Shown here in pieces: positions 10,978 to 61,856 of a DNA stretch of 64,000 nt. Below the pieces are notes generated by a model. The model was not told the origin of the DNA. It saw only the letters and a program-made list of their open reading frames with translations, and searched no databases. This DNA is from Styela clava (lineage: Eukaryota). Positions within the stretch are counted from its first letter, which is position 1; every line of letters begins with the position of its first letter. The DNA is taken from assembly GCF_964204865.1 (NCBI RefSeq), contig NC_135263.1, positions 496,001 to 560,000 of the forward strand, read 5' to 3'. A program made the translations under genes and the position numbers.

Positions 10978-13900
10978 TTATAATTCATTTTCACAGATGG
11001 CTCCGTAATATACATTGGTGGGGGAAACATTAGAAATTCCTTGATTGCTGTCTTCCGGGTATCGATCGACACGAACAACAACAGTTGTGCGCGGTACATC
11101 GGAACGCGGAAAATTTGGAAGCCAAACCTCAGTTGGCAGAGACACAGCTTGGCCCGTCGATGAATGCAGCTGAACGTTATGCTGAAATAAAAAATATATG
11201 TTTTAGGAAATATAAAAAAAATGGCAGTTTGAGAATATAGTTGAGTATGGTTGAACCAGTAATCCCTGTCATATTATGTGACAGAAAAGAAGAATCTTAT
11301 TTAATTTATGTATGTATGTATGTGAGTGTGTGTGTGTGTGTGTATGTGTGTGTGTGTGTGTGTGTGCGTGCGTGCCGTGCCGTGCGTGCTTGCGTGCACG
11401 CGTGCGTGCGTGATAAGTAAGTAAGTGTATGTATGTGTGTGCTNNNNNNNNNNNNNNNNNNNNNNNNNNNNNNNNNNNNNNNNNNNNNNNNNNNNNNNNN
11501 NNNNNNNNNNNNNNNNNNNNNNNNNNNNNNNNNNNNNNNNNNNNNNNNNNNNNNNNNNNNNNNNNNNNNNNNNNNCGTAAAGGCAAAAATACAGGAATTA
11601 ATAAATATCAACATTAAAGACGGGATGTATACACAAGATCATACTGGCCTAAAACACATGAAAGTGCGGCATACACGCCTCCAGTTAATCTCCAGTAAGA
11701 AACTGACTGAAGCGTGACAATACAACGTGATTATTCTGCTCAGTCACCTTACAGTGATTACCGTTGGTGGATAAGAATTGTATGTTGTATGGAATAGACA
11801 CATAAATCATATTAGTTTGGATTAGTACCAGAGCTGTGTAGTTGAAGTTTTCCATTGGTGTTGGAGTCAATTTTTGAATTACCTGGAAACATCACATGGA
11901 GACGAAAGTTTTTGGTTGAACTTTTTGATAGAAACTGGAAAACGCTGACAAAATTTTTTTAAATCCGGTAGGAATATCTAATTTGATGCCAGCCTAGAGT
12001 AGTTAGTGGTATAAATGGCTCGATTTGAACTACTGTCTTACGCTGAAGATATGTGGGTTTAACCTCAAGATAATTTAAAATTTGTTACAACATGGTAATG
12101 CGGTAACAACATCGGCCATATTTCATAATGATTTCATGTATGGCCGAATAAGAAACATGATTCAGACTCGATCTATCTACCTTGTAAGTCATTCCGGTAC
12201 GAACGTCCATGTATGACTTTTCATCACGAATTATTGGTCGTAAATATTCTCGAAGCAGATTGTAGTGTGTGATGTCATATATGTTAGCAAGTTTGTTCTC
12301 GCAAAGAGTTTCAGCGAAGCTGAATGTGACGTTCTTCACGTCATAAACGATCGCTCGAAAACATTTCGAATTATAGATAACGCCGCATTCTAAAAGAAAA
12401 ATATCAGTCAAAATAAATAGATAGTCAGATATTTATGGAACAATTATTAAGGAGAATACTTATTAGTTTTGTAGGTAGTTTCTTGAGGTAATTTTGCTCT
12501 GCCCTATATTAAGGCGTCTTGCGGGGATGAAGAAGTTAGTTTTTCAAAAATAATCTTAGGCGAACACGTTGATGTCTTATAACCAAGCAAACAATTTAGT
12601 GATTTCTTGATTCGTTTTCACATCTCAGTTCAAACAAGGCGCAAGACAAAACAATTGCTTCTACATAAGTATCTAGCATTCTCGAGAGCATTGCAATTTT
12701 TCTATTTTGGGCCTTAGTGCTGGGGAATTCCTTTAACAAAAAAATGTCGCGTGGTAAAATGCATTTAAGAGGGAAATATTTTCCGCGTAAACGACGAGGA
12801 AAGAGAAGGCCAAACAAACCTGCACTCTGTTCGGCTTTTGTAGTTTGTGGGTGCACAGTAGAGAGAAAGGATTCCTTAGTTGACCACGGGAATATAGCAG
12901 GGTCGGTTGAAGTACGGGCCGACGAAGTTTTATTGTTTCTGAATTCTGTGTGAAAGAGTGAACTTATATTACAAGTTTATAGCAAGATTTATAGTTTCAC
13001 GTACTTACGGTAAGAATGATATACTAAACGACAATGTGGATACATTACAGATTACTGTGACTGACAGGCCCATTTTCTAATATTTATTCTACTGGATGCG
13101 ATACCGAAAGACATAGATTTTCATACCCTGGGGAGTGGTCGTTTCTCTGACACCTACAACAAAGGGCGTGGTCGTCTCTGTTACACCTGCAACAGATGGC
13201 GGCACTGAGTTCGTCTCTGATTCTTCAATCGACTTTTTTAATTGATAAAGCATACTTTCCACTCCGTCAAATCGTTCCGTTAAAGCTGCAAAACACAAAT
13301 GTAAACAGAATTCGAATTAAGTCAGTTTCACAACCCGTATTCATTGAATTTTTTATCAGACGATTTGAACCTCTCTTTTTCAGGTTAAAAAGGGGATTTG
13401 AGATAGGTATTGTTAAACTACACGTCTTGCTATGATAGTTAAGAATTATGTTAAAAAAATGAAATTTTACTAATAAAACGATTGTTTGGGGGCATGTTTG
13501 CTATCATACCGTTTGACAAATTAAAAAAAATAACAAACGTATTTCGGAGGAAATTATATTGTGGACACGAACCTTCCAAAGCCTTCTGTTCGTCTTTTGT
13601 GCACTGTCCATTCTGAAATAGAACAAGAGAGAAATGTTTAAATATATGGACATTAAGGCTGCAAATACATGCAGAAAGGCCTCAGCTTAGCAAGTGTTCC
13701 CATACGCTGTAAAAAAGTGTTTCTATGGATTGAAGTAAAAACGTAAAATCTGAAATGAGGTCACGAAAAAAGTAAGTTTCAAACCTTCAGTACTCGTAGA
13801 TAGAGGAAATTTCAAGAAAAGCTAAAAAAAATTTGTTTTTAGATTGTAAACAAAACAGTTTTATTTCTGCAAATAATACCAACAATATGAAACTATTGCT

Positions 13901-19135: not shown

Positions 19136-21444
19136 TTATATTTCACATATGACACCGTAGGTTGTGTAGGATGGTGGATCATTGAACATTCCCTGATATG
19201 CATCCCCTGGATCTTTATTGACAAGAACAACAACTTTTGTGCGCGATGCTTCGGATCTCGGATAAGTAGGATTCCACACTTCTGTTGCTATAGTGATTGG
19301 TCTTCCACTTGAAAGCAAAAGCTGATTGTTCTGTAACAATTGAACAAATAGTTATAAAATCTGTTGCTTGAAATATTAATGCGACTGACATATTGTGAAA
19401 AGATTTGATTGCAGTGATTCCATAATAAAAGTAGCCAGCATAGACGAAGTATGGTGAGTAATGTGTCACCCATGTGTTTTGAACTGCATGAAAATGGGCG
19501 AAAACCAGAAATCAATGAATTTCAAATTCAAAAATATTCGTAGGCTATGACGACACAATATATTGTAAATTGTATTTCTATATTTTAGGTTTTTCTAAGT
19601 ATCCAATCTTCTAATAAATCATAATGCATCGTTCGGCTGCCCATTATTTGGAAATTCTATCAAAAAAACGCTTTTGGCCAATTGTCGACCCGGTTAACTT
19701 AATAAAATCAGTCAACCTTTGCTGAGATTGTGATCCATCAACTGACCTTATACTCTATCCCAGTCCAGATCCAAATCCCTATCTCACCAGCAGGGATCAG
19801 TGTACGTAGATGAGGGATCAGCAGCTGGTAATGCTTGAGGTCGTAAATATTCGCGGGTTTTCCGTTGATTGATTTGCAGATTGATTTAGCTTTGTTGAAA
19901 TTGACGCTTCATGCACCATACACAACTGCTTGGTAGCATTTTTTCTTGTATGTGACGTCACACTTTTCTAAAAATATTATTGTGGCCATTGAATATTTTA
20001 TGTTAATAATGACAGCGCCTTCTGGAATAACGTCAAAAAATCTGGGAATAAAATTTGTAGGTTTGTTAGTTCAATGCGATTTCCTCCTGGATTCTATTGA
20101 TTCTAGGGAGAGAAAAGTCGATAAGACGAGCTAACAACGGCGGAAATATCCCGTTTCAGAGTGCAAGTTCAGATTATGGTGGTGAAAGGAGTCGTAACCG
20201 ACTAGTGGTGGAGTTAACCACGCAGCGACGACCAGGGGCGCAATAAATCTATTTTTAAACCTACGCGCCTGCTATTCCTAGCGATTTGACGGGTGTGGCA
20301 TATTTTATAGTTATATCATAAAACACAAATATAAATTACTTTCAGCCTTTATCTTCTCATCACGACTCTTCTTAATCAGTCTGACGATATCTGTAAGAAA
20401 ATTGATTTATTTGTGAGTAAGGAAAGACGTTTTGAATCAGTCTTGCCATGTTGTTTTTTCTCGTATGACATTAAATACCTTGACCTAACCATAATATGAC
20501 AACAGCATATAAAAGCGTTGATATTTTTTTTTCAGCAAAGTCCAGATCTATAATTTATCTATCCTGATATATAATATTAATCACAAAAATCGTTGTGAAT
20601 GAGTTTTGCCAAACTTTTTAGAAGATTGAAAATAACAGGCAATTGAAATGCAATGCCAGAAATTTTTTAGAAAGCGGCGTTTCACCAAATAAGAGTCTAA
20701 TTCGGAATTAAAAGTCTTAATTGAAAACTATTACTCTTTGACAGTTTATTTTGAACCCGTGCGTAAATATGAATCAAAGTCATATGTTTAGTGCAGGGTA
20801 ATTATTTGTGAACCCAAAACACATCATAAGGTAGGAAGAACTCACCGGATCCATCGTTTTTCTGTGAAATTAATAAAAAATGCGAATGATTGGTAAAGTA
20901 ATTATAACACGTAGGTTGTATTAGATTTTATTATTTGCGTGACATGCATGCAGAAGTCGGATTTAAAATTATTTACACGATTCAGAAAATAAAAGCTTCC
21001 AGTCAGTTGAAAAATTATTGTTCCTTGAACAGTGGTTCCCAAATCGTGGCTTAATTACTACCCGCGTAACAATTTAAAATGGCCCGCCGAACTTGAGTGA
21101 AATAGTTTAACAGTTTATGTTTTTTTCTTTTTGTGTTCTAGATACAGGTAATTGTTACATCACCATTACAGTTTAAGCACGTGCATATTCGTAACAATTC
21201 AGTTCGGTATCGTAACAGGTATCTACGGGCGCATCTCTATCCCGGACCAGGAATATCCTCCTGCTTCTAGTTTTTCCCGCTGTCAACCAACTTTACTGGA
21301 GAGATCATTGTCTGCCCGCCCTAAGCCTTGTTTGGAGTCAAAGTGTGAAAATGCCCGATTAAAAAAATAGCAATTGTGATTTTACCTCGCAATCCCCAAT
21401 TTGAACGAGTTTTCCATTCACGATCTTTGAAACGCAGGCTCCAG
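19136..21444 (-). pseudogene. CTLD lectin copy B: exons 2-6 only, with an in-frame TGA
   Basis: Exons 21444-21386, 20861-20846, 20390-20340, 19967-19747 and 19330-19136 with intact splice sites. TGA at 19911-19909 (YGA*SVNF versus YDVTNVNF in copy C). Homology to copy C stops at about 21520, so no signal exon is seen. Confidence 0.75.
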
Positions 21445-21902
21445 CTGTCAGAAAAAACGTAAAGTTAAATATAACGACATCTTGTGCCAATTGCGACAAC
21501 ACTGATAGAGAGTGATATTTTTTAAAATAACATGTAATACCTAATAGTCCTATCACAGGTTCGACGGATGCGTTGGATTGTGCTAAACTAAACATCAGAA
21601 CAGGATTCCAATTTTGGCCGGAATAGTACTACACGCCAAGAGCACTAGACAGCCCGAAAATTTAATAATCGTTACAGACGTATTCGGCAAACTTTATGTA
21701 GTACCGGACCAAAGATACATTTCCAGAAGCGTGTGCGCCACATTAATTTCTGTCTATTGACAATCGTTGCACTGAACTTCAAAATATGGTGAACCTGCAA
21801 TGAGGTGTGTTTGCGATCATAAAATAAATAAATGTGAAATATCGATTTGACCACGAATATCACAACACTTATAACAGTGTTTGTTAGCATATCGAAAGTA
21901 TA

Positions 21903-22012
21903 CAGGGTGTCCATAAAGTTCATTTCCATTTTTGTTATGAAGTTAGTTCTCAATATATCTTGACCCGGTTTGTTGGTTTTTTGAAAAATTTCAAAACTTT
22001 ACGGACACCCTA
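21903..22012. mobile_element. Small Tc1/mariner-type MITE
   Basis: TA|CAGGGTGTCCATAAAGT ... ACTTTACGGACACCCTA|TA. Confidence 0.65.
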
Positions 22013-23259
22013 TATATTCGAAGCTGTAGAAAAATGAAATCCGTTCTTATTGTTGGTTTTAGTTCAGAATGGTTCTGTTAAATGAGGGAACCCGTTGTTA
22101 GCGATTTCGATACAAAAGAGAACTCGTTTTGGAACTTTGAATTCTACCACTGAAAGTAAGTAATAATAAGCAAAAGCAAGTTTCATTTTTAGACAAGTCT
22201 TTAACCATGTTCAATTTTGATCACAGTCTAGATGGGCAAAATTTTTGGCCCCTAAAAAAACGAAAAAAGGCGAGTCAAATGCAAACCACGGCTTCTCGTC
22301 CGGTTACCAGTACCGTGTTGGGTCATATTAGACAGTAGGTTTGGGCAGAGAATCTCAATATATTGTTTCATGTGTAATCTGTGAACAAGGGTAGAAACAA
22401 CGCCTTTCCCAGCTCTCTGGTTTTCATCCGCTTCTCTGATAACTGACTCACTGGTTCAGAACAAGAACAAAGAAACCCACAAATGATCGAATCAATGTTT
22501 ATTATCATGTTTGGTTATATACAGAAATCACATGGAGACAGCTATGAATTTATTTACTGAGCAAAAAGGTTTCAATAGACAAGGCGACCAATTCAATGCA
22601 TGGGTTATACGGTTATTTATAAAATAATAGTAAAGGAACAATGTATAAGTAAGCAGTGGCAGGATTCAAGGGGCTCCCGCAAACCGTTTCTGTTTTTTTT
22701 TATGATTTAGTTCAGCATGTTTCTCCAAAATGAGAGAACCCGTTGTTGTTAAGTTCGATGCAAAAGAGAACCCGTTCTTAGATTTTTGAATTCTGCCACT
22801 GAAATTAAGTGATAATAAGTAAAAGCAAGTTTCATTTATTACGACGAGCATACTTGTGTGGCCTTTATCTAATTATAATCACAGACCGACTTCAGTGTGG
22901 AATAAAAATTCATAAGTAAAAATATCAGTAACTTAACTTTTATAAACACGTAATTTAGTCTCCTCTCATAAATAAAATCACGTTTTAAAGGTTTTAATGC
23001 TTGGAAAACAGTCTTTGTAAAAATATGCGATTTAGTAAAATTGAAGAGTAATTTAAGATCAGATCGTTCACGGGCAGCTTATAAATTTTGCATAATCAGA
23101 CATGGACCTATCATAATTTGAACATTTAGAACAACGGCCATAGAAAAGCAAACGAAAATTTTAATGAAAATCTATATAGATAACAACAGTCATTTAACTG
23201 TTTTTGTCTTTTCTATCATTGAATCCGTCAACAAAGTTCTGTCAGGTTTTGATCTGGTT

Positions 23260-26091
23260 TTATATTTCACAGATGACACCGTGGAATGAGGAGGATGGGT
23301 ATTTATTGATCATTCCCTGATATGCATTCTCTGGATCTTTATCGACATAAACACCAACATTTGTCCACGATGCTTCGGATCCCGGAGATTTAGGATACCA
23401 CACTTCTGTTGCTATAGTGATTGGTCTTCCATTGGACAACAAAAGCTGATTGTTCTGTCACAATTGAATAAACAGTTTTTAATATCTGTTGCTTGCAATG
23501 TTAATACAACTGACATATTAGATGAAGAATGAAAATATTTGCGTGTAGGAAAAGACTCCATAGTAAAGGTTGTCAGCATAGACGTATGGGGGGTAACGTT
23601 ACATAAAAATGGGTAAAAAGCAGAAATTAATGAATTAAAAATGCTAAAATATTTGAAAATTAAAAAAAACACGATCGGACGACTCGGATATGACGTCATA
23701 ATATCTTGGAAATCATGTTTAATATGTTTAATTTTTTTTAAACGCCCAAATTAACAATAAGGCATCGTTTACCTGCCCATCATTTGATACTTTTAATAAT
23801 AAACCGCTTTTGGAAAATTGTACCCAAGATGAAGTTTACAAGAAAGAGTCAAACTCTGCTGAGATTGTGATCCATCAACTGACCTTATACTCCATTCCAG
23901 TCCAGATGTCAATCAATCCCCAACCACCAGGAATCAGTGAACGTAGATAAGGGAGCATCAGCTGGTAATGCTTGAGGTCGTAAATATTCGCGGGTTTTCC
24001 GTTCATTGATTTGCAGATTGCTTTGGCATCGTTGAAGTTAACGTTGGTTACATCATACGCAACTGCTCGGTAGCATTTTTTCTTGTATGTGACGTCACAC
24101 TTATCTGAAAACATTATTGTTGACATTGAATATTTAATTTAATAAATGACACCTTCAGAAATGACGTCATAGAATCTGGGAATAAAAGTCGGTTTTTTAG
24201 TTCAATTCAACTTCCTCCTGAATCAATTCTAGGGAGAGAAAAGCCGATAAGACAAACTAAGAACGGCGGAACAGATTGTTCAGATGCATGGCGGTGGACG
24301 GAGTCGTAACCGACTAGTGGTGGGGTTAATCACGCAGCGACGACCCGGAGTCCAATGGACCTTTCCCCGAGCATCGACTTCCTTGTTTACTTCGTGACAT
24401 TGGCTAATCAGCAAGATGCAAAAAGTGACGTAACAATGCCCCCTTTTTGCATCCGCTCAGACACTTTTCTCACTCAGACAGATTTTCAAGCGTGATTGTA
24501 AACATTACCTCGTTTTCGCGTTTTTGAACTCTATTCGTTAGTTTTCAGTTGTGTTTTGGGAACTTGGATAAAAATCAGATAATTCAATGATCACTTAGTT
24601 TTTCTAGGAGTTTTAATTTAATTGCAGTAATAAAAGTTAGTGTAGAAATAGCTGTGATAGACTAGCCTGAAATTTTTTACCGGTACTTTTAAAAAACAGA
24701 TTGTTGTATGCGATGAAACATAAGGATGGTTTGAAACACATACCCCATTTTACAGGCGCCAACTCGCAAAAGCACTCTTAAAATAGCCCTGACAATTTTG
24801 CAATGGTGAAGTGTAGGGAGAATTTTCCGAGGGTCAAAGGTCGGGGAAAGGTCCATACTTGTAATATTAGGTAAGTTAAATCTATTTTTAAACCCACGCG
24901 ACATCCATTTCTAGCGCTTGGCGGTTGTGGCATCTTCTATAGTCAAATCGTAAAACACAAATATAAATTACTTTCAGCCTTTATCTTTTCATCACGACTC
25001 TTCTTAATCAGTCTGACGATATCTGTAAGAAAATTGATTTATTTGTGAGTAAGGAAAGGCGTTTTTAAATCAGTCTTGCCATGTTATTTTTTTTCGTATG
25101 ACATTAAATAACTTTAACTAACCATAATATGACAACATACGACATATAGAAGCGTTGTTGATATTTTTTTTTTAGCAAAGTCCAGATCTAGAATTTATCT
25201 ATCCTGATATATATTATTAGTCACAAAAATCGTTGTGAATGAGTTTTGCCAAACTTTTTTAGAAGATTGAAAATTACAGGCAATTGAAATGCAATGCCAG
25301 AAAAATGCATGTCATATGTTTAGTGCAAGGTAAATATTTTTTAACCCAAAATAATCATAGAGTAGGAAGAACTCACCGGATCCATCGTTTTTCTGTGAAA
25401 TAAATAAAAAATGCAAATGAATGGTAAAGTAATTATAACACGTAGGTTGTATCAGATATTATTAGTTGTGTGACATGCATGCAGAAGTCGGATTTAAAAT
25501 TGTTTACACGATTCAGAAAATAAAAGCTTCCAGTCAGTTAAAAAATTAGCGTTTCTTGAACAGTGGTTCCCAAATCGCGGCTGGCGGGCTAATTACTACC
25601 CGCGTAACAATTTAAAATGGCCCGCGTACTCGAGCGAAATAGTTTAACAGTTTATGTTTTTATTTTTGTGTTCTAGATGCCGCTAATTAGAGAGAGATCG
25701 TTGCCTGCTTGCCCAAAGTCTTGTTTGGAGTCAAAGTGTGAAAATGCCCGATTAAAATAATAGCAACTGTAATTTTACCTCGCAATCTCCAACTTGAACG
25801 AGTTTCCCATTCACGATCTTGGAAACGCAGGCTCCAGCTGTCAAAAATAAAACGTGAAGTTAAATATAACGACATCTTGCGCCAATTGCAACAATGATAG
25901 AGAATGATATTAATAAATGATTTAAGAATCTCCGGTATTGTGGCATTCTTGGCCTCAGAAGCCAGGCATGCAATTCAGTGTTACAAAATATAACAGTGAT
26001 TTTATCCAAAACAAATTTTACCGGGTAGTTTTTGCTTCGCATACAATCCATAGATGAGAGAGATGAACAAAATAATTTTGACGAAGTCCAT
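23260..26091 (-). CDS. Secreted atypical C-type lectin-domain protein C (6 coding exons, 203 aa)
   Basis: Exons 26091-26022 (MDFVKIILFISLIYGLYAKQKLP), 25837-25779, 25392-25377 (16-nt microexon), 25022-24972, 24104-23884 (KCDVTYKKKCY...AKAIC...IWTGM) and 23454-23260 (...EVW...GVICEI*). GT-AG introns, consistent phases, 612 nt, no internal stop. Confidence 0.88.
24357..24854. mobile_element. Non-autonomous DNA transposon with 14-bp perfect TIR, flanked by AT (ISL2EU/Harbinger-like)
   Basis: AT|GGACCTTTCCCCGA ... TCGGGGAAAGGTCC|AT; absent from the paralogous intron of copy B (about 20243). The superfamily call is tentative. Confidence 0.75.
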
Positions 26092-44104: not shown

Positions 44105-44755
44105 TTATTCTCCCCCTTCTGCTTCTTCCTGTTCGTCCAACGCTTTTTCTAACAGTTCAGTTCGGTGCTTATCTATGACTTCCATCTCTCTGATAAGCTG
44201 GGATATCTGGGTATTGATAACAGATCTGTGCTGCTTTCCTTGTCCGAGTTTTTCCATTTCGTTTAAAAATTGACGACGTTCGACAATTTCTTCCTGAATT
44301 TCCTCAAAGCGATCTTTCTGGGGGGGAGGTTCGATTTTTCGTACAATTTTCCTTTTCGGAATTTTTTCAATGTCTTCCCCGTATGCCATCATATTTGCAA
44401 GTCTTTGCTTTTCTTTGTCGAGCGATCGAATCGGCTTTGGAACAAACTGTGGGCGCTCGTACGCACCTGTTTGCTCGATTTTATCTAAAGTTCGCATGTT
44501 ACTTGATACAGTAATTCGATGAGGCTTCATTTTTGGGGGTGATCGCTTTTTCACGTCGCTCGAAGTTGGTGCGACACGGGTAGGAAGACTTTTACCCCCT
44601 TTCATTGACTCGCTTAATTGTCGTCGCTGAAAGTTAGTCAACCGTGACTCTTCCATCATGACTTTTAACAGATCTTGAGTCTCTTTGCTGTACGCAGGTC
44701 GTTCCGCTTGGCCAAACAGCCCGCCTTTCGCTACAGGCCAGCTGTTAGATGCCAT
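44105..44755 (-). CDS. C22orf23: UPF0193 protein EVG1 homolog, single-exon CDS, 216 aa
   Basis: YSKETQDLLKVMMEESRLTNFQRR...LP...PTSS; EKQRLANMMAYG; DRFEEIQEEIVERRQFLNEMEKLGQGK...EISQ-type UPF0193 motifs. Confidence 0.88.
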   Translation of the reverse strand: MASNSWPVAKGGLFGQAERPAYSKETQDLLKVMMEESRLTNFQRRQLSESMKGGKSLPTRVAPTSSDVKKRSPPKMKPHRITVSSNMRTLDKIEQTGAYERPQFVPKPIRSLDKEKQRLANMMAYGEDIEKIPKRKIVRKIEPPPQKDRFEEIQEEIVERRQFLNEMEKLGQGKQHRSVINTQISQLIREMEVIDKHRTELLEKALDEQEEAEGGE

Positions 44756-45859: not shown

Positions 45860-46897
45860 TCAAAAATCCAGATCATCATCCGGATCTTCTTCATCAAAGT
45901 CATCGGCATCATCAGGTTCATAATAAATGAAACCAGATGCTGACACTCCTCTTGTTGTTTCTGAAGATGATGCGGGCTCTCCTCTTGTTGTTTCTGAAGA
46001 TAGTGCAGGCTCTCCTCTTGTTTCATCGTCCATTTTTACTTCGAGGTGCGGAGTTTTCTTGATATATGGCATCACCAGTTTACTTCTAGCTTCTTTTTCG
46101 TCTTTGCTCAAAGATAAATTAAAAGTTGATGAAACTATATTATCATCCTCCTTTGAAATGGGACTTTCCCCTCCCTGTGAAAGATCCACATCTTTGATAC
46201 GCTTCTCCGTTACCCAAGGTTTAGAGCTGATTAGTAGTCCATTTGCTATCGAGAATATTTCAATGAATTCAGTTACTTTGCCATGTTTCTTTTTGTGTAA
46301 AATTTTGCACAAATTTGATGATTTTGGAACACTGGTTTTGTCGTTTGTAGAGATGCTAGAAATTTCTTTTTCTGTGACCAAGTCAACAATATTATTCGCT
46401 AAATATTCAAAACAGTTTATCGTAGCAGAGTCGCACAAATCGCGATGTAAAAGTCCAAAAATCGAAGTTTTTCCACCTTCTTTTGAAAAATTTTGTTGAA
46501 AATGTTGAAACATAAAAGTTATTTGTTGAACATTGCAATGCCATAGGAGATTCGTAAAGGAGTCAATAACAAGAGCAACATTTTTCGACCCCGGGGAATC
46601 CCCTATTGTTTTCACAAAATCAAAATTGGCGGTTACTTTACTGGGGCTATTGAGGTCGTTCCATCCCAATGGGTCGCTCGCAAAGTCATGAATAATGATT
46701 TTATCTCTCGTTCCAGTAAAAACTTGGTCGACGAACTCAAATTGCAACTTTTCAAATAAAAATACATGGATTACATCAAATTTTTTGGCAAAATTATTCA
46801 TGAAAACATAAAATAAATCCCGACCTTGAACAGATACTTGATCAGTTAGCAATGTAAAGTCCGAAGACTCATGGCCTGATATGATTTCTGATAGCAT
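45860..46897 (-). CDS. ELP5: Elongator complex protein 5, single-exon CDS, 345 aa
   Basis: N-terminal LLTD..SVQGR, HDFASDPLGW, VIDS, LLHRDL, STFNLSLSKDEKEARSKLVMPY, and C-terminal IYYEPDDADDFDEEDPDDDLDF. Confidence 0.92.
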   Translation of the reverse strand: MLSEIISGHESSDFTLLTDQVSVQGRDLFYVFMNNFAKKFDVIHVFLFEKLQFEFVDQVFTGTRDKIIIHDFASDPLGWNDLNSPSKVTANFDFVKTIGDSPGSKNVALVIDSFTNLLWHCNVQQITFMFQHFQQNFSKEGGKTSIFGLLHRDLCDSATINCFEYLANNIVDLVTEKEISSISTNDKTSVPKSSNLCKILHKKKHGKVTEFIEIFSIANGLLISSKPWVTEKRIKDVDLSQGGESPISKEDDNIVSSTFNLSLSKDEKEARSKLVMPYIKKTPHLEVKMDDETRGEPALSSETTRGEPASSSETTRGVSASGFIYYEPDDADDFDEEDPDDDLDF

Positions 46898-49751: not shown

Positions 49752-52700
49752 CAGTGTTCCCTTTAAGGTGTGCGCGTGTGCGCGCGCACACAGCTTTCAG
49801 AGGCCGCGCACACGCATAGATTTACTGCGCACAGACGTATTTCGATGTAATCTATCAATGTTCTCGGTTGGCAGGTTGAAAAAGTTTGTTATTGGATTTG
49901 CTAAAAGGATGCATTTCTTTGAAAGTTAAGATGGCATCATGTGCGAAGAAGGTACCAGCAGTAACTGTAGCGGCCATGATCATAAGCATTGACCGCTGTT
50001 ATAGTAACTTAACTGGCAACGATATCATGGGGTCATTGAACCTTGACCATTTTGGCATTGGCGGGATCTCTTTCGGCGTGAGTCGCTTGGAGGTAGGACG
50101 TATAAATTTGTATCCTATTCAATCGGAGGGGTTTTAGCATTATTAATTAGGCGTCGTTGAAATTTACATCATATAATTCTGTTTTTCCTATTTTGTATAG
50201 GTATTATTGGTCCCTCCTGTGTAATAGCACTGTATTTTACCGGATTTTTGTTTGACAACCATTTCATCATTATTTGACTCATATTTCACCAACTTTTAAC
50301 CCAGCAATAAACGTATTTGGACAATCATTTCGAGACTTTGAAAGAAACTCAGACAGAACCGCGTCATCAAAAATAAAGTGCCTGTACAACTATTTATTCC
50401 AGTCGCCCTAACGAGCACGTCGCCATCGTATGGTTCTGAGCCGTTATAGTAACATAATCAATAGCTGCCATAACCTAGCTGCTGTATCTATTGCATGTTT
50501 GTCCACTTATGCTGTAGTTGAAATAAGCTTAAGATAGCCTACTAACAGAACTGCTACTACTAATTGTATTGTAAGTAGCCTGAGGTTGTAGGCTACATTG
50601 TAATCCGTTAATTTGTCCGTTACTCATTGAGCCATTTTTCAACCAGGTTAGTTTTATTAGGCTGTTAGTTACCGTGAACCCTGCAACAGAATAGGCTAGA
50701 AAAAACCAGCTTACGTTTGAAAGAGGCTAAGTAAACAGTTCTGAGCCTCGCTTATGCTTTTTGGGAACTGATGCGATTGTGCTGTACTCTGCACATTGCA
50801 TTACTTTAAGCAAAATGTCAACTTTGATTAAAAAAACCTGTGAGATGTTTTTCTATTCATTCAATTGAATACTTAGATCAACGAAGCCAATAAAAAACTG
50901 TCATATCTGAATCATTTTCACAGAATATTACTTTTTGTTTCATGGCTCAACATACTGATAAAGTATTATCCTGTAGCTGTAAAGACTAACTTTTCTGCTC
51001 TGTATGTCAGCCGAACCAAAACGTAAAAGGACTGCTAACTCGTTCAAAAAAGATTGGTTGGATGAAGCAGTGATAACGGCAACTCCCACGGCTCATGATG
51101 ATCAACGTGTATATTTACGTGATGTATTTGTATATGATGAAAATGAAGGCATTATTACATGTCTTTATTGTCATGATGCCATGGTTTCTGGTGAATTTTC
51201 AAATGGCAAAAAGTGGTACAATAATGTATGGAAGCTTGACTTTTTAAAACGGCATTTAAAAAGTAAGACCCACCTATATGGTGTACAAAAGCTCAGAAAC
51301 AAGAACCCTTTATTACCAGCCCATGGAATATTAAAAATGCTAAGTGAAACCCCAGAGGAACGTAATCGGAAGCGTGCATGTAAGGAAGAGATTGTAATTC
51401 TTATTGACAACATTCTATTGGCAGTAAAGATGAACAGTTCTTTACTTTCTGTACAAGATATCAACGACCACATGGCTAAGTATGTTCGAATACCTGAAAG
51501 TTGGCCAAGCAAAAATTACGCTTTTGAATTTTTGGAATCTATTGATGTAGTTATTAGCCAGGAAATAATGGAAGAAATAGCTTCTGCCGATTTTCACACT
51601 CTAACTGTAGATGAAAGTACAGATATATCCGAAAGCGAATGTTTGATTCTATATGTTAAATACAGAGTCTCTTTTGAATATAAAACTAGATTTGGTGGAA
51701 TCATACAACTAAAGTCGTGTGATGCTTCATCTATTGTCACTGCAATTGAAGAGTTTTACAAAAAATATAGACTGGAGCTGGATAAAATGGTTATGTTTAC
51801 ATCCGATGGTGCAGCAGTAATGCTAGGTAGAAGAAATGGTGTGGCGGCGAAGCTCAAAGAGCGTATACCACATTTAGTACAACAACACTGCGTTGCACAT
51901 CGGGAAGATTTGGGCATAGCTGATACATGGAAAGAAGTGAAGCTATTGCAAGATATCGAAACGTTAATGCGAACTATTTATTCCATGTTTTCTCGTTCTA
52001 CAATCAACCGCTGTAAATTTCAAGATATTGCTGCAGCTTGTGAAAACGAAGCGATTGCTTTTAAACCACTTAATGAAGTTCGATGGTTGTCACTTTGCTC
52101 TGCAGGCCATCATTAAAAACTATGATAGCTTGATTGCATATTTTGAAGAGATGAAATCTAATGACCCAATTTCTAAATATTGTTTTAAAAAATTAAAAAA
52201 TAATGGAGTTCGTATAGCTTTGGAAGTTTTAAATGCGGTTTTTGAGCAACTAGCTGCTTTGTGTAAAATTTTCCAAAGACAAGGATTGACACCGATTGAT
52301 GCACAGAATTTTGCACATGCAAAAATATATAAACTACGGCAGAAGTATCTTGGTGACACAACATTTTGGGGTGAAAGAGTGGATAATTTGTTAGCTAGAA
52401 TATCGGAAGAAGAAATTGCCACTTTTGACTCTGAAGGACTGCTGGATTTTATAAGGCTTTTATGTGATCATCTGATAGAAAGATTCCCAGAAGGAGAGGT
52501 ACAAGACTGGGTAGCTTTTGATTGTGCTGCATTGAAATCCCCTTGCTATACTTTTGGTATCACCGAAATTAAAGCTCTGTGTTCTAAATATGAGTTTGTT
52601 TTGCCAGAACGAAGTATAATTATTGATCAATACACAGATTTTAAATACGCAATAGCTGAAAAAATTAAGGCTGGAGTTGTTAGCACTTTTGCTGATTTGA

Positions 52701-53310
52701 TAAACTTTATGTTTCAGCATGAACAGTTTAGAGAATTGGCAAAGCTTGTAGATATCGGTGGGACTTTTCTTGCATCCAGCGTTGAATGTGAGCGCGGGTT
52801 TAGTTTGATGAATTCCATCAAAACCAAGCTAAGGAACAGACTGGGAGAAAGGCATTTGGACATGATAATGAGGATCAAGTCTTATCAGCGAGATGGATGT
52901 GTTATAGACAAGGTGAAGGTTTATGAAGAATGGGTCAGCAATAAGGATAGACGTGAGAAAGTTGGTCAATGAAAGTAAAGAAATACTGTAAAACATAGGT
53001 CCTCGACTCTTTATAGCATATTGTCCCCTGACACGAGAATTGTTTCGTTTTCTTTTGTTCTTTTTTCACTCTTTATTTGAATTCAAATAAAACCATCTTT
53101 TACAATCAATTTCATTTGTTATTTTCCATGTATGATAACATATAGCCTTCACTAAAGCATTTACAATCTATAGAAAAACTTATTAAGCCTAATAAGCCCA
53201 CTTATTACCCGGTTAAAGCGCCAAAATTTCTTCATTGTTTTTTTGCACAAATATTAGTCATTTCCAAAAAAGTGCGCACACACCAAAATTTCTGCATAGA
53301 GGGAACATTG
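49752..53310 (+). mobile_element. Full-length hAT DNA transposon (3559 bp)
   Basis: 14-bp TIR CAGTGTTCCCTTTA/TAGAGGGAACATTG (2 mismatches); perfect 8-bp TSD ACCGGGAC (49744-49751, 53311-53318); subterminal GTGCGC(G/A)CAC motifs; internal transposase. Confidence 0.95.
51004..52972 (+). pseudogene. hAT transposase (ZNF862-like) with a single frameshift at about 52090
   Basis: N-terminal C..C/H zinc finger, TVDESTD, TSDGAAVM, HCVAHR, EVRWLS, then a frame change to HFALQAII...SSVECERGFSLMNSIKTKLRNRL (hATC dimerisation domain). Confidence 0.9.
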
Positions 53311-53324
53311 ACCGGGACCCATGA

Positions 53325-54964
53325 TTTTTTTTTTTTTTTTTTTTTTTTAAATGGATCCACAATGTGGATTATTCAATATGTAAATAATAAATAAATGCAA
53401 TATAAATAAAGATATATTGTGTACCGTAAGTGAACAAACATATATACCAGTAATATCAAGATAATTCCATCAGATATAATATTCCATATAATCCAGGGAG
53501 TTCCAATAATTCATTTGTTGATTTCGTAATACAAATTACATAGTTTATTTTTAATTATTTAGCATGAAAAAACATAATTTTATAATTATTCACAAGTTAT
53601 TACAAATCATGGCAAGTTCTTTTATATAACAAAATTCCTTTCTCACTTTTTCTATATTTCTTCTCATTAGAAGTGAGTTCCTAATTTTCATAATAACATT
53701 ATTTATGCTTGGGTTATGATTTTGAAATATTACAGCGTTACGCTCCAACCAAATTTTATATCTTGCTGTACAAAATAACAATATAATAGCATTACGTTGT
53801 ATAATGGATAAATTTATATAACATTGGTCATTTAAGTCCAATAAAATGCAAGTTTTATAATTATTTTTTATCACACAGTTACTCATTTTTAATGCCACAG
53901 AAAAGATATAATCATAGACATTCTGAGTAAAAACACAATTCCAAAACAAATGAGACACAAATTCAGAATCTTGTTTACATAACACACAAATATCATCCCC
54001 AGAAATATGTTTTATTCTTGGCTTAACCTTGATTGATAAAATGTCCCACATTAATTTATAATTGAAAGTCCTTACATTATTGGCCAAAATTTTAGAATGT
54101 ATATTTGAACAAGCCCCTATTAAATTACCATCTCTCAAAAAAACAATTCTATCCCCACCCTTCGAATTATTTACAATTTTATTATATAAATGTCTATGCT
54201 TTCCTTGAATTAAATCAGTTTCAGTGATGTTGTACTGTCTCAGAAAGCTGATTATAGTTCCATAGTATTTCTGAGGGAAAAAAACATGGGATACACTATT
54301 ATTAGTAGGCAATTTGAAAAATAAACTAAGCTGTTGACCTATGTTGTATTCAACAAAATTGAAAACAGATTGTCTGCATTGATCAATAGCAATATTAGTT
54401 CTTTTACAATAATACTCAAATGCTGTCATGACATACATGCTCATAGTAAAAATAGGAATGTTAATCATATCATATCCAGCCAATGATTTGCATTTGCACA
54501 AAGTTTCTATTTTTAAAACACTTCTTCCATTGAATATGAAAAACTCCACATCTTTATTGATTTGTTTACCGATATGCAGGGGAATAGGAAACACTTTCGC
54601 ACAATATAAAAACAAGGGTAATATTTTCAGTTTAATTAGAAGACATTTTCCATCCAAAGATAGAGGAATATCCATCAATTCGTCTATTACAGTTCTGGCA
54701 TTATTTAAACAATTAATCCAAGTATATTTATAAATTATATAAAGTATATATATAAATTAAAATTATTCCAAGTATATTTAAAGTCTGAACGATAGACAAC
54801 TTAGAAAATAAACTGGGATTATTCCATGTTCCTACTTTCAAAAGTTTCGTCTTTTCCATATTTAACCTCATTCCCGTTGCTAGTTGAAATTTGTTTATCA
54901 AATCCAGTGCTGAATATATTGATGTCTTGTTTCGAATTGTCAAGGTAATATCATCCGCATAGCT
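53325..54964 (-). mobile_element. 5'-truncated L1/Tx1-clade non-LTR retrotransposon
   Basis: YADDIT...F..ATGMRLNMEKT (end of RT), frameshift near 54730-54770, LSLDGK, CVLC...EFVSHLFWNC zinc knuckle, IWLERN. 24-nt poly(A) at 53325-53348; TSD GGGACCCATGA(TT) at 53314-53326 and 54965-54977. Confidence 0.9.
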
Positions 54965-56411: not shown

Positions 56412-58283
56412 ATGGGGAAGTCACATTTTGACCACTGGTTTATCAAAGAAGAATTGAAATGGAGAAGTGTTGCCAGTGCTTTTTGGACTTTCATGATGAC
56501 ATTTCCTGTACTTGCCGCAGCAGTTTTTGTGTTCACAATCCACCCAGGGAGACATATTTTCATGTTTTTTGACTTTATCAGCATTGCATCGACGATAAAA
56601 ACATGGGTTATATTTCTTTTCATTGCATTTTTTGCAAGTATGCTTGTTTGCTTGCATTTTAAATGTTTCAAAGTTTCACCGATTTTTCCAGTTCATCGGT
56701 TCGGAATTTTCACAAAAGTTTTGAAACCAAACAATCTAATCCACATCTTTATTAGTGGAGGATTTTCGTCGTTAGTTGCCCATCTTTTCACAAAAATCGT
56801 TCCTGGAAGATATTCAGGCATATACAACCAATGCTCAGATGAAAACGAGAATCTCAAACTCTGTATAAATGAGTTTTGGTTCATCTTTGTATTCTTCGGT
56901 TTCGTTGTCGGCGTCACAAACAGCATAATCTTGATTTCTTGTCAAAAGAACACGTTAACTTTTTTACACGTCCAGGAAGCAAGATTCTTGTTCATAAAAT
57001 GCAAATTACCGTGCATCATCACCATGTCTGCGGCTAAAAGTTGGGAATATTTTCGTCACTTCGTTGTTGGATATTACCTTGTGGGATTCGTTGCTAGAGA
57101 CCTTGTTGCAGTATTTCTCGGACTTGTAGCAAATAAAGAATATCTTCTCAGCGTTTGGACAATTTATCAAATAATTCCTGTAGCTTGGAACCTTTGGCTT
57201 TTGGGAACGTTTTTACTCTTGATTTGGGAGTTGTCATGGCAACTGTTTAATATCTATAACACCCAAGATTACCCTTTTATGTTCGACTCTGTTTTTCCGG
57301 AAGATCAAAACAAACTTCTTCTTGATAATTTGAACGAATCTAATCCCCCAGCTGTTCAAAATCTCGCTTTCCAAAGCTTAAGCATTGCTGTCAAACGAAA
57401 CGCATCAAAGCGTCAGCAAATATTTCAGCTGAGTCATAAAACGGAGAATGGACGGCCAATTTGGTGGAATAAAGTTGTAGAAAATTGTCTTCCACGAATT
57501 CAGCATCTCACAGAAAGCATTATTGAATACCAAACGTCTCAAGATCAATGGCAAAGTAATAGAAAAGTCTCTTCAACTTCATCTGAACATAGCAACGAAA
57601 GCGGGATAACCAGCCCTGCGAGTGTTTCAGTTTTCAAGCGAAGAGACTTCAATGTCTCGTCTTACCAAGCTGATACAACTAATATATCCTACTTTAATGT
57701 ATCTTCGTTAAATGATACTCACTCTACGTCACGAATTCAGAATGTCTCAACTCTCGCTGTCCCAACTCCAAGATTATGGACATCGCCAACTAAAGTTGGG
57801 AAAGATGACACTCTCACTCAAACAAGTTTTGTTCCAGCTCCGTTTCAAGTCGGAGTGTTTCAAAAGCGCTGGGGATATTTCATGCAGAATTTGAAAACTT
57901 TATCTATAGTGCAGTATTTTTTCAAACCAATTCCTACAAGGCAATTACGGAATTTATACCGAGAACATTTCATATATAAATGTGCGATGCAAATTCTATC
58001 GTATCTTTGCGCTGCTTCGGTTTTAGAGGACAAATTTGGTATCGTTCAAGGTCATTTGCATGAAATAATTTCATCGCTAATCGAACTGTTAGTTGCTTCT
58101 GAAAAGCTCGGAAAAGTGTCGCCATCTTCTACCTATGTGTATAAACTTCATGTTGGATTACGAAACGAGATTAAAGCATCGTTGCATCGAATCACAGACG
58201 CGTATGGCGAAAGTTTAAAGTCTGTGAATCTGTCACAGGAACATAGAAGAAGACTGGAAGGATTTTGCTCATATGCTGAGTAG
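56412..58283 (+). CDS. NDC1: Nucleoporin NDC1 (TMEM48), single-exon CDS, 623 aa
   Basis: N-terminal WR..AS, about 6 transmembrane segments, CINE, LAFQ.L...RQQIF.LS...PIWW, and C-terminal ASVLEDKFGIVQ...SLHRITDAYG. Confidence 0.92.
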   Translation: MGKSHFDHWFIKEELKWRSVASAFWTFMMTFPVLAAAVFVFTIHPGRHIFMFFDFISIASTIKTWVIFLFIAFFASMLVCLHFKCFKVSPIFPVHRFGIFTKVLKPNNLIHIFISGGFSSLVAHLFTKIVPGRYSGIYNQCSDENENLKLCINEFWFIFVFFGFVVGVTNSIILISCQKNTLTFLHVQEARFLFIKCKLPCIITMSAAKSWEYFRHFVVGYYLVGFVARDLVAVFLGLVANKEYLLSVWTIYQIIPVAWNLWLLGTFLLLIWELSWQLFNIYNTQDYPFMFDSVFPEDQNKLLLDNLNESNPPAVQNLAFQSLSIAVKRNASKRQQIFQLSHKTENGRPIWWNKVVENCLPRIQHLTESIIEYQTSQDQWQSNRKVSSTSSEHSNESGITSPASVSVFKRRDFNVSSYQADTTNISYFNVSSLNDTHSTSRIQNVSTLAVPTPRLWTSPTKVGKDDTLTQTSFVPAPFQVGVFQKRWGYFMQNLKTLSIVQYFFKPIPTRQLRNLYREHFIYKCAMQILSYLCAASVLEDKFGIVQGHLHEIISSLIELLVASEKLGKVSPSSTYVYKLHVGLRNEIKASLHRITDAYGESLKSVNLSQEHRRRLEGFCSYAE

Positions 58284-60335: not shown

Positions 60336-61856
60336 ATGACGGATCAATCGCAAGTATTGAAAGTTGTCCTCATAGGAGATGGAGGTGTCGGCAAAAGTTC
60401 GTTAATGAATCGATACATAACTGGAAAATATGATGGACAGTCTTATCACACTATAGGTGAGTTCAACTTCCATTTGTTTTTGGACGCCAAGTAGGATAGG
60501 AATTTACCTATTTATCTTTGGGGAAAGGAAAGATTTCACTGCTGAATACATACAGGGTTACCATAAAGTCCCTTCACAATTTCAATTTTGTTATAAAGTC
60601 AGTTCTCAATATATCTTAATTAACCAGGTTTGTTGTTTATTAATCAGTAATTAGTATTTTTACTTCATTTAATACATCTGTGAAGGCAAGAACAATATAT
60701 GGTATCGATAAATTTTCTTTGCAATTTAAAAAAAATTTAAGACTTATTGTACAACCATACAATATTATTGGAATCGAGTTATGAAATAAAATGCGGATAA
60801 TTATTACCTAATACTTAGATGGACATCATGACATATAAGAGTATGTTATCATAATTTCCTGTCAATTCATACCAGGAAATCCCTTAGCAACACAGAACTA
60901 ACGGAAGTAGTCAATTAATTTCTTTGAAATAAAACTTATGTGTTAATAAATCATGGTTCAGCTGATATAATATTATGATGCCCTAGTGCAGTGGTTCCAA
61001 ACCTTTTTTCAACACAATCCCCCCCCTTGTGGAGTATTTTTAAGCTCTCAATTCACCCTCCTTTTTACATCGCTTCAAATGTCAAAAACTACTCAAATAA
61101 CCCCTCTCTCCGCTATACGAAATAAAAAGCCTCCAGGTTGGGAAATGTTGCCCTAGTCGTGCCGGCATCGCAGATTGAATTCCCCTTGATCAAGATCTAC
61201 CATAGATTTCTTATCATTTAGAATGATTCAACAAAAATGTTCCAATTGGTTATGAAAGGATCCTGCCCAATCAATAAAAATGATGCATAAAACAATATAT
61301 TCCCTTCTTCCATCTAATTAAATAAATTATATTTCTTATTTAAGGTGTGGAGTTCTTGAACAAAAACATCACATTAGAGAACAAAAAATATACGTTGCAG
61401 ATCTGGGACACTGCAGGCCAGGAACGATTCAAAAGTTTGCGGACACCGTTCTATCGAGGAGCTGACTGCTGCCTCCTGGTGTATGCAGTCGACGACGAAC
61501 AAAGTTTTCATAACCTGGACCTCTGGAAAAAAGAATTCTTATTTTATTCAAATATTGAAGACAGGTCTTTTCCGTTCATCGTGTTAGCGAACAAGTGCGA
61601 CGTGGATCCCGCAGATCGCCAAGTCTCGGAGGACCAGGCTAATCTATGGTGCCAGCAGAACGGGGGGTATCCCCACATTTCAACGAGTGCAAAAGACTCC
61701 ACAAACGTAGACACATGCTTTGAGACCGCTGTACGAAAGACCGCTGTCTCACAGCTTCATACCGGGGAAGCCAGTATCAGTAATTTAACCTCTGGCACTC
61801 CTAGTGTCAACTTGAAAACAATGGCAGCAACAAATCGATCTAGCGGTTGTTGCTAG
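60336..61856 (+). CDS. RAB9: Ras-related protein Rab-9, 2 exons, 210 aa
   Basis: Exons 60336-60456 (KVVLIGDGGVGKSSLMNRY...HTIG) and 61345-61856 (VEFLNK...WDTAGQERFKSLRTPFYRGADCC...NKCD...SAK...GCC prenylation motif). Confidence 0.95.
60989..61150. mobile_element. Degenerate hAT MITE in the RAB9 intron
   Basis: CAGTGGTTCCAAACC...GGTTGGGAAATGTTG with TSD CCCTAGTG/CCCTAGTC. Confidence 0.65.

Follow-up and report, generated by a model that had tools for sequence, protein, structure and literature searches.

Diversifying selection on binding-loop codons in a large family of C-type lectin-like proteins, predicted to be secreted, in the tunicate Styela clava

Does an excess of amino-acid replacements between two neighboring lectin-like genes reflect selection for diversity, or the decay of one of them? 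The question is raised by a 64,000-nucleotide (nt) window of the Styela clava genome (C18:496001-560000 of the 377-Mb assembly; positions given without a contig name refer to this window). On its minus strand, positions 19136-24104 contain the 3′ halves of two tandem genes, B and C, whose C-type lectin-like domain (CTLD) is divided between the last two exons. A preliminary description of this DNA had reported that replacements between B and C are concentrated in the CTLD and had proposed a diversifying recognition system built on a CTLD scaffold. We found strong, recurrent diversifying selection on approximately 19 codons in binding loops and strands of these genes, whereas purifying selection acts on the scaffold and on the exons for the neck and signal peptide. 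It is likely that these genes form a family of secreted CTLD proteins that are driven to differ at about 19 positions and serve as a germline recognition repertoire. No living group is more closely related to vertebrates than the tunicates, which, to our knowledge, lack antibodies, T-cell receptors, and the major histocompatibility complex; the means by which they recognize targets specifically have yet to be explained.

Recounting the codon differences between B and C gave 19 amino-acid changes and 3 purely synonymous changes among the 64 codons of the last exon, exactly the numbers reported before. The penultimate exon contained 19 amino-acid changes (one of them to a stop) and 5 synonymous changes in 73 codons, where about 20 and 5 had been given, and exons 2-4 contained 1 nonsynonymous and 4 synonymous changes, as previously counted. 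Translation of the exons also reproduced the clustered replacements described earlier (AGEIGIW/GGWGLID and DPPSYTTY/KYPSSSFH), as well as the alternating series R/W-T-K/N-V-V/G-V-L/Y-V-N/D. The contrast between the CTLD and the N-terminal exons was significant (Fisher p = 0.0068), and to this extent the reported CTLD excess stood. It did not extend to an excess over neutrality in this pair alone: by the Nei-Gojobori method, the numbers of nonsynonymous (dN) and synonymous (dS) substitutions per site in the CTLD were 0.172 and 0.122, giving a ratio (omega) of 1.41 that was not significantly above 1 (binomial p = 0.23). Similarly, the description of the introns as close to identical holds for the 5′ introns, which are ~90% identical, but fails for the intron between the two CTLD exons, whose divergence (d = 0.27) exceeds that of the exons themselves.

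Copy B is a pseudogene, a dying member of its family, since exon 1 is missing and an in-frame TGA interrupts the penultimate exon. A search upstream of copy B for an exon 1 and promoter resembling those of copy C recovered neither. Because one partner is a pseudogene, the B/C pair alone cannot show positive selection.

To place the pair among its relatives, we searched the assembly with the 76-amino-acid exon of copy C. From 576 first-look candidates, we obtained 150 scored matches, all with E ≤ 4e-13, corresponding to at least 150 paralogs. Stops were present in just six of the 150 scored matches. The paralogs lie in tandem arrays on C18, C5, C10, C14, C16, and other contigs. Among 30 loci that were examined individually, 28 are intact, with a conserved GTCAGT donor, CAG acceptor, and TAA stop, and two encode the annotated S. 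clava proteins P0107 and P0120 exactly. Family members are annotated merely as "uncharacterized protein." A search of 1.84 billion representative proteins returned 86 hits; among the 18 that were looked up, those with a name were S. clava "uncharacterized" proteins, and all 35 hits in a second protein search were from S. clava. B and C are tandem members of a large S. clava multigene family, with every named hit in the searched protein databases coming from this species.

We extracted both CTLD exons from these 30 loci and fitted codon site models, using our own GY94/F3x4 likelihood with the topology and relative branch lengths fixed from IQ-TREE. For the one-ratio model M0, our code and IQ-TREE gave log likelihoods of -5118.66 and -5118.65, respectively. 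The preliminary description had held that a dN/dS of 1 or less in the CTLD across the family would speak against its proposal. The family-wide M0 omega was 0.99, but this mean conceals 16-22% of codons with an omega of ~5-6, and models that allow positive selection were strongly favored, with twice the log-likelihood difference (2dlnL) reaching 326 for M1a/M2a, 346 for M7/M8, and 305 for M8a/M8. When each exon was given its own tree, 2dlnL was still 118-144. A posterior >0.95 was assigned to 19 codons. At these codons, the proportions of nonsynonymous (pN) and synonymous (pS) differences were 0.45 and 0.16, versus 0.061 and 0.100 at the other codons. Trp, Tyr, Phe, Arg, and Ser are overrepresented at the selected sites, and half of the selected codons that differ do so by at least two nucleotide changes.

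As a control, separate fits were made to two disjoint clades (L001-L010 and L012-L030). These fits identified 13 and 18 sites, respectively, with 11 in common (Fisher p = 1.6e-10). Omega at the sites selected in the other clade was 6.05 (p = 1e-7 compared to omega = 1) and 3.95 (p = 2e-4), while the remaining codons had omegas of 0.94 and 0.68. We also compared exons with introns. When we took the 13 intact pairs with the lowest intron divergence, exon divergence was the greater in every one. In the pair L002/L007, for example, divergence was 0.038 in the upstream intron, 0.087 in the penultimate exon, 0.028 in the following intron, 0.113 in the last exon, and 0.043 in the untranslated region (UTR). 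N-terminal exons from the same pairs of genes had a dS of 0.04-0.27 and a dN of only 0-0.01, compared to a CTLD dN of 0.11-0.16. Thus, the contrast between the two parts of the gene is not a by-product of a younger 5′ half.

These results bear on an account in which the pattern reflects neutral decay of pseudogene B together with recent gene conversion of the 5′ part, and positive selection is not involved. The preliminary description had set this history against its own proposal. Copy B does carry a stop and lack exon 1, omega for B/C (1.41) does not significantly exceed 1 and is ~0.8 outside the 19 sites, and a CTLD intron that is more diverged than its exons lies beside a 5′ part that is ~90% identical. 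However, B/C dS in the N-terminal exons (0.17) is not below that in the CTLD (0.12). The same contrast is also found in intact, expressed paralogs, where omega over the whole domain reaches 3.2. Moreover, of the 49 B/C replacements, 26 sit on the 19 codons under selection in intact paralogs; as these are more than half of its replacements relative to C, copy B diverged under the same regime as the family. As a full explanation, decay of B with 5′ conversion is contradicted by the intact-paralog pairs, and we consider it highly improbable.

Where do the selected codons lie in the protein? As a proxy for the fold, we used the annotated paralog P0111, which is 75% and 72% identical to copy C in the two exons, and an alignment of 32 family members. 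The AlphaFold 2 (AF2) model of P0111 has a mean pLDDT of 83, with values >93 across the CTLD, and contains the double-loop α/β CTLD fold (β1-α1-α2-β2-long loop-β3-β4-β5). Foldseek matched the model with a probability of 1.0 to tetranectin (1HTN), the CL-K1 trimer, CD23, mincle, domain 4 of the mannose-receptor carbohydrate-recognition domains (CRD4), langerin, and mannose-binding protein (MBP); target TM-scores for tetranectin, CL-K1, CD23, mincle, and mannose-receptor CRD4 were 0.62-0.73. All neighbors in the ESM Atlas were Lectin_C clusters. The exon of copy C also matches the five canonical CTLDs of the protein P0001 (E = 1e-30). A neck helix of ~14 residues (pLDDT 54-64) precedes the CTLD in the model. 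From these comparisons, the family protein is predicted to consist of a helical neck followed by a CTLD and to be closest to tetranectin and the collectins.

The WTGM motif and the cysteine pair C93/C198, which correspond to the WIGL-type core and the C1-C4 disulfide, are invariant or nearly so in the 32 family proteins. Other CTLD features were absent. No cysteine was found in the region of the C2-C3 disulfide (β3 to the loop after β4) in any of 29 aligned paralogs, and the EPN/QPD and WND motifs occurred neither in the consensus nor in any aligned paralog; the position equivalent to EPN is hypervariable. Single exons gave no match to Pfam Lectin_C (PF00059), and a profile search of PDB sequences gave none at E <0.01, the sole match being lithostathine (E = 0.79).

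One of the 19 sites maps to the β1-α1 loop, four to the α2-β2 loop, four to the long-loop region at the canonical EPN position, one to β3, three to the β3-β4 loop, three to β4, and three to the β4-β5 loop. The loops and strands that hold these sites form the ligand-binding region in other CTLDs. Fourteen of the 19 are encoded in the last exon, where most sequences are free of gaps. Rather than being scattered over the structure, which the preliminary description had listed among the outcomes that would count against it, the sites appear in the model to be grouped in the binding-loop elements of the CTLD. None of the three results that it had set against itself was obtained, and its proposal of diversifying recognition on a CTLD scaffold is supported.

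Several points weigh against reading the family as a recognition repertoire shaped by diversifying selection. We drew on 30 of at least 150 paralogs, with 28 analyzed for selection; the site models had branch lengths fixed up to one scale factor and were run with our own code rather than codeml or HyPhy. The PHI test detected recombination among the paralogs (p = 0.003), the relationships of flanks and exons are mosaic, and recombination among paralogs can inflate site-model tests. Most members fall below the Pfam Lectin_C threshold, with full-length E values of ~0.02-0.03, although three paralogs carry a precomputed PF00059 hit. Finally, an immune role for the family is one that we infer.

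Because the paralogs recombine, we relied on tests that are free of the assumption of a single tree. The concern is that an omega above 1 could be an artefact of conversion or recombination, of misalignment in an indel-prone loop, or of multi-nucleotide mutation. In addition to the PHI result and the mosaic relationships, two features would fit such an artefact: the frequency of selected codons with two or more nucleotide changes, and the presence of indels in the α2-β2 loop in four sequences. Against it, two disjoint clades recover the same sites with a cross-validated omega of 4-6 and the per-exon trees agree. In addition, the 14 sites in the last exon lie in mostly gap-free alignment, the pN of 0.45 at selected codons contrasts with a pS of 0.16, and exons are more diverged than introns in close pairs. 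We therefore see only a very slight chance that the signal is artefactual. As a record of diversifying selection, it is among the clearest that can be obtained from a single genome.

Recombination has also shaped the family. L026 and L027 (C5:1794744 and C5:1694490) differ by only 0.5% in the penultimate exon but by 11% in the last exon, a clear instance of single-exon exchange within the C5 tandem array. More generally, the paralogs swap segments by gene conversion or recombination, partly exon by exon. Family members are born and die, with copy B being one that is dying.

The predicted family protein is small (~200 amino acids) and probably secreted, with a signal peptide, a short two-cysteine hairpin, a charged neck helix, and a divergent CTLD. 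In the copy C gene model and the annotated paralogs, the N-terminal signal peptide is of the cleavable type and the protein ends at the CTLD, a layout other than that of a type II membrane protein. A collagen-like Gly-X-Y repeat is absent from the copy C model and from the ~200-amino-acid annotated paralogs. In some members, such as L007 (P0120; C18:463560), a long Ser/Thr-rich mucin-like N terminus (311 amino acids) replaces the hairpin and neck and is joined to the same CTLD exons; thus, the CTLD cassette is reused with other heads. L002 and L003 share the upstream intron of L007.

We compared the family with known CTLD systems. Tetranectin and the collectins (PDB 1HTN, 4YLI, and 1HUP) provide the best structural matches to the model and, like the predicted S. 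clava proteins, are secreted and soluble, with an α-helical neck directly before the CTLD. Unlike them, the S. clava proteins have no collagen region, EPN/QPD or WND motif, or C2-C3 disulfide, and trimerization is unsupported. Tetranectin and the collectins are also conserved single genes, whereas the S. clava family is hugely expanded and hypervariable. The rodent Ly49 and KLR genes resemble it in being germline tandem CTLD multigene families that evolve by birth and death and by gene conversion, with positive selection acting on the face that contacts the ligand; their binding is also independent of sugar, as we would expect for the S. clava proteins. However, Ly49 and KLR proteins are type II membrane receptors with signaling tails, while the S. 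clava proteins have a signal peptide, are predicted to be secreted, and are encoded by an order of magnitude more copies. The S. clava family is unusual for its copy number, for having lost the sugar site and one disulfide, and for how strong and sharp its selection signal is. The S. clava genome paper describes expansions of collectin and mannose-binding lectin (MBL) genes as well as those for ficolin and contains nothing on hypervariability (PMC7540406), and our literature search turned up no paper describing a CTLD family that is hypervariable, whether in Styela or in other tunicates.

If these proteins do constitute a recognition repertoire, they would be soluble binders, each with its own specificity. 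Because the EPN and WND motifs are absent, their ligands are probably not bound in the calcium- and sugar-dependent way. The most likely role would be humoral non-self recognition, such as pattern recognition or opsonization; weighing all of the data, we put the chance that this is the role at slightly short of even. One could go further and envisage an antibody-like germline humoral repertoire, in which hundreds of soluble neck-plus-CTLD binders with a paratope-like surface rich in Tyr, Trp, Arg, and Ser, generated by selection and exon-level conversion, would underlie specific non-self recognition in solitary styelids and possibly allograft rejection with memory. We regard this extension as unlikely. 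The family nonetheless offers concrete candidates and 19 defined positions for studies of binding, expression, and population variation, and its CTLD surface, which tolerates extreme variation, is a compact natural scaffold.

Expression data bear on which alternatives remain plausible. We used contigs from three probable RNA runs (X1, X2, and X3) from three studies and from a DNA run from a fourth study. The 3′ UTR of copy C was covered by contigs of all three RNA runs and both CTLD exons by contigs of X1 and X3, while RNA depth in the copy C intron was no more than trace in any run. The splice junction is confirmed by an RNA loose end at 23456 whose sequence continues into the end of the penultimate exon. 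Thus, copy C is a working, transcribed, and spliced member of the family. A 172-nt RNA contig (23256-23427) that spans most of the hypervariable codons of the last exon was identical to the genome. In the DNA run, no variant was found at the hypervariable codons of copy C, and the only exonic difference was 23958 T>G (Met to Leu), with the minority form being that of the reference.

Since the RNA contig and the DNA run match the copy C reference, the diversity is germline and lies between paralogs, as far as contigs can show; the exact RNA match covers the last exon only and is at the level of contigs. That other samples carry the same C allele also argues against copy C being a hyperpolymorphic locus. 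The preliminary description had suggested comparing cDNA with genomic DNA for somatic variation, and the shared allele in RNA and DNA of other samples argues against such variation. An X1 RNA contig (23923-24023) stops at 23923, the edge of the α2-β2 hypervariable codons, and RNA depth was zero in the bin 23700-23899; the stop may reflect branching of the assembly graph on allelic or paralogous variation in the loop.

Under a somatic model, hypermutation or cassette conversion would vary the CTLD within an individual. Nothing direct favors it, and pseudogene B, lying beside C, could in principle be a donor cassette. However, the last-exon RNA contig equals the germline reference, independent samples have the same sequence, and the diversity is explained by the family's hundreds of germline paralogs. 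With RNA equal to genome, we rejected somatic diversification, to which we assign a minute chance.

A different possibility is that the proteins are self/non-self determinants, either histocompatibility markers or receptors or components of sperm-egg self-incompatibility, rather than receptors for microbes. Genes for sperm and egg proteins commonly show faster evolution in exons than in introns, and the Mytilus acrosomal lysins M7, M6, and M3 are small secreted CTLD proteins, encoded by a handful of genes with a role in sperm, that are reported to be under positive selection. The S. clava family differs from these lysins, with their known sperm role and few genes, and the expression data used here do not link it to gametes. 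Allograft rejection with memory in solitary Styela species, as described in references cited by one article (PMC2248247), and the occurrence of known allorecognition genes in linked multigene families (PMC12582321) are consistent with this possibility. On the other side, RNA contigs from two studies and the DNA run carry a near-identical copy C, placing the diversity between paralogs rather than alleles. This argument is weak, as contigs drop rare variants and alleles of <95% identity fall outside the comparison. The family proteins also have no transmembrane anchor. Overall, we find a self/non-self role of this kind quite unlikely.

The proteins could also be secreted effectors with an anti-predator, anti-fouling, or antimicrobial function that are engaged in an arms race, as are the C-type lectin-like proteins of snake venom (snaclecs). 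Snaclecs are small secreted CTLDs without sugar-binding motifs, and their exons evolve faster than their introns, both of which are also seen in the S. clava genes. The habu venom genes that show accelerated evolution include C-type lectin-like proteins. In contrast to the S. clava proteins, snaclecs are loop-swapped heterodimers from a venom gland, and sequence-level similarity between the two groups is nil. We know of no venom or delivery apparatus in ascidians. Accelerated evolution of venom protein genes is described in the habu genome report (PMC6062510). However, at least 150 copies is far above the size of typical toxin families, and the neck-plus-CTLD architecture resembles humoral recognition proteins. 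An effector function is therefore, in our view, very unlikely.

Copy C is a complete gene of six exons in which every junction is AG/GT. The amino-acid sequence of its exon 2 is identical in five other paralogs. The features of copies A, B, and C are listed in Table 1.

Table 1. Positions of lectin-like gene features in the window
Feature	Position	Strand	Basis and remarks
Copy C exon 1	26022-26091	-	ATG and hydrophobic signal peptide, phase-1 donor; read from sequence; no counterpart upstream of B
Copy C exon 2 (59 nt), small two-Cys β-hairpin	25779-25837	-	AG/GT sites and frame
Copy C exon 3 (16 nt)	25377-25392	-	Sequence
Copy C exon 4 (51 nt), charged neck helix	24972-25022	-	Sequence; helix in P0111 model
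Copy C penultimate exon, CTLD first half (β0, β1, α1, α2, WTGM strand)	23884-24104	-	Sequence; RNA contigs end exactly at 24104
Copy C isolated selected codon, β1-α1 loop	24046-24048	-	Site models and mapping
Copy C hypervariable α2-β2 loop codons, 4 sites with posterior >0.95	23908-23922	-	Site models and mapping
Copy C last exon, CTLD second half and TAA stop	23260-23454 (coding 23454-23263)	-	Sequence and RNA contig
Copy C hypervariable long loop, β3, β4, and adjoining loops, 14 sites with posterior >0.95	23284-23397	-	Site models and mapping
Copy C 3′ UTR	22775-23259	-	RNA contigs in X1, X2, X3
Copy B exon 2	21386-21444	-	Sequence comparison
Copy B exon 3	20846-20861	-	Sequence comparison
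Copy B exon 4	20340-20390	-	Sequence comparison
Copy B penultimate exon, disrupted	19747-19967	-	Sequence; RNA depth nil
Copy B in-frame TGA, at a family hypervariable codon	19909-19911	-	Sequence and site mapping
Copy B last exon and stop	19136-19330 (coding 19330-19139)	-	Sequence; single 87-nt RNA contig, X3 only
Copy A penultimate exon, divergent subfamily, 47% identity to C	12178-12390	-	Sequence
Copy A last exon	10990-11181	-	Sequence

In copy A, the WTGM core motif has an Arg where its Trp is otherwise nearly invariant; this copy may be degenerate or may belong to a structurally different subfamily. Its intron contains a run of N at 11444-11575.

A near-exact repeat of the lectin cluster lies ~113 kb away on the same contig, pairing L002 (C18:492626) with L003 (C18:379176) and copy A (12178-12390) with C18:395045-395257. 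The L002 and L003 blocks differ at 1 of 477 intron positions and at 0 of 400 upstream positions, and among the few differences are three penultimate-exon replacements, including one at a hypervariable codon. The distant block arose by segmental duplication in the very recent past or else is a haplotype that was retained.

Two other repeats lie close to copies B and C. The first, at 24353-24860 within an intron of copy C, is present in very high copy, with a summed DNA contig depth of ~2 million, and many contigs break at 24353-24355. The second, at 21900-22500 between B and C, has a summed DNA contig depth of ~100,000. Both are also present in the RNA runs, and both are probably transposable elements.

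The lectin cluster is followed by housekeeping genes at 44105-44755, 45860-46897, 56412-58283, and 61347-61856, which encode UPF0193, Elongator Iki1/ELP5, nucleoporin Ndc1, and a Ras-family GTPase. Several of these are long uninterrupted open reading frames (ORFs), such as Ndc1 at 623 amino acids. ORFs at 51004-54678 contain the transposon-type domains DUF4371 and zf-RVT.

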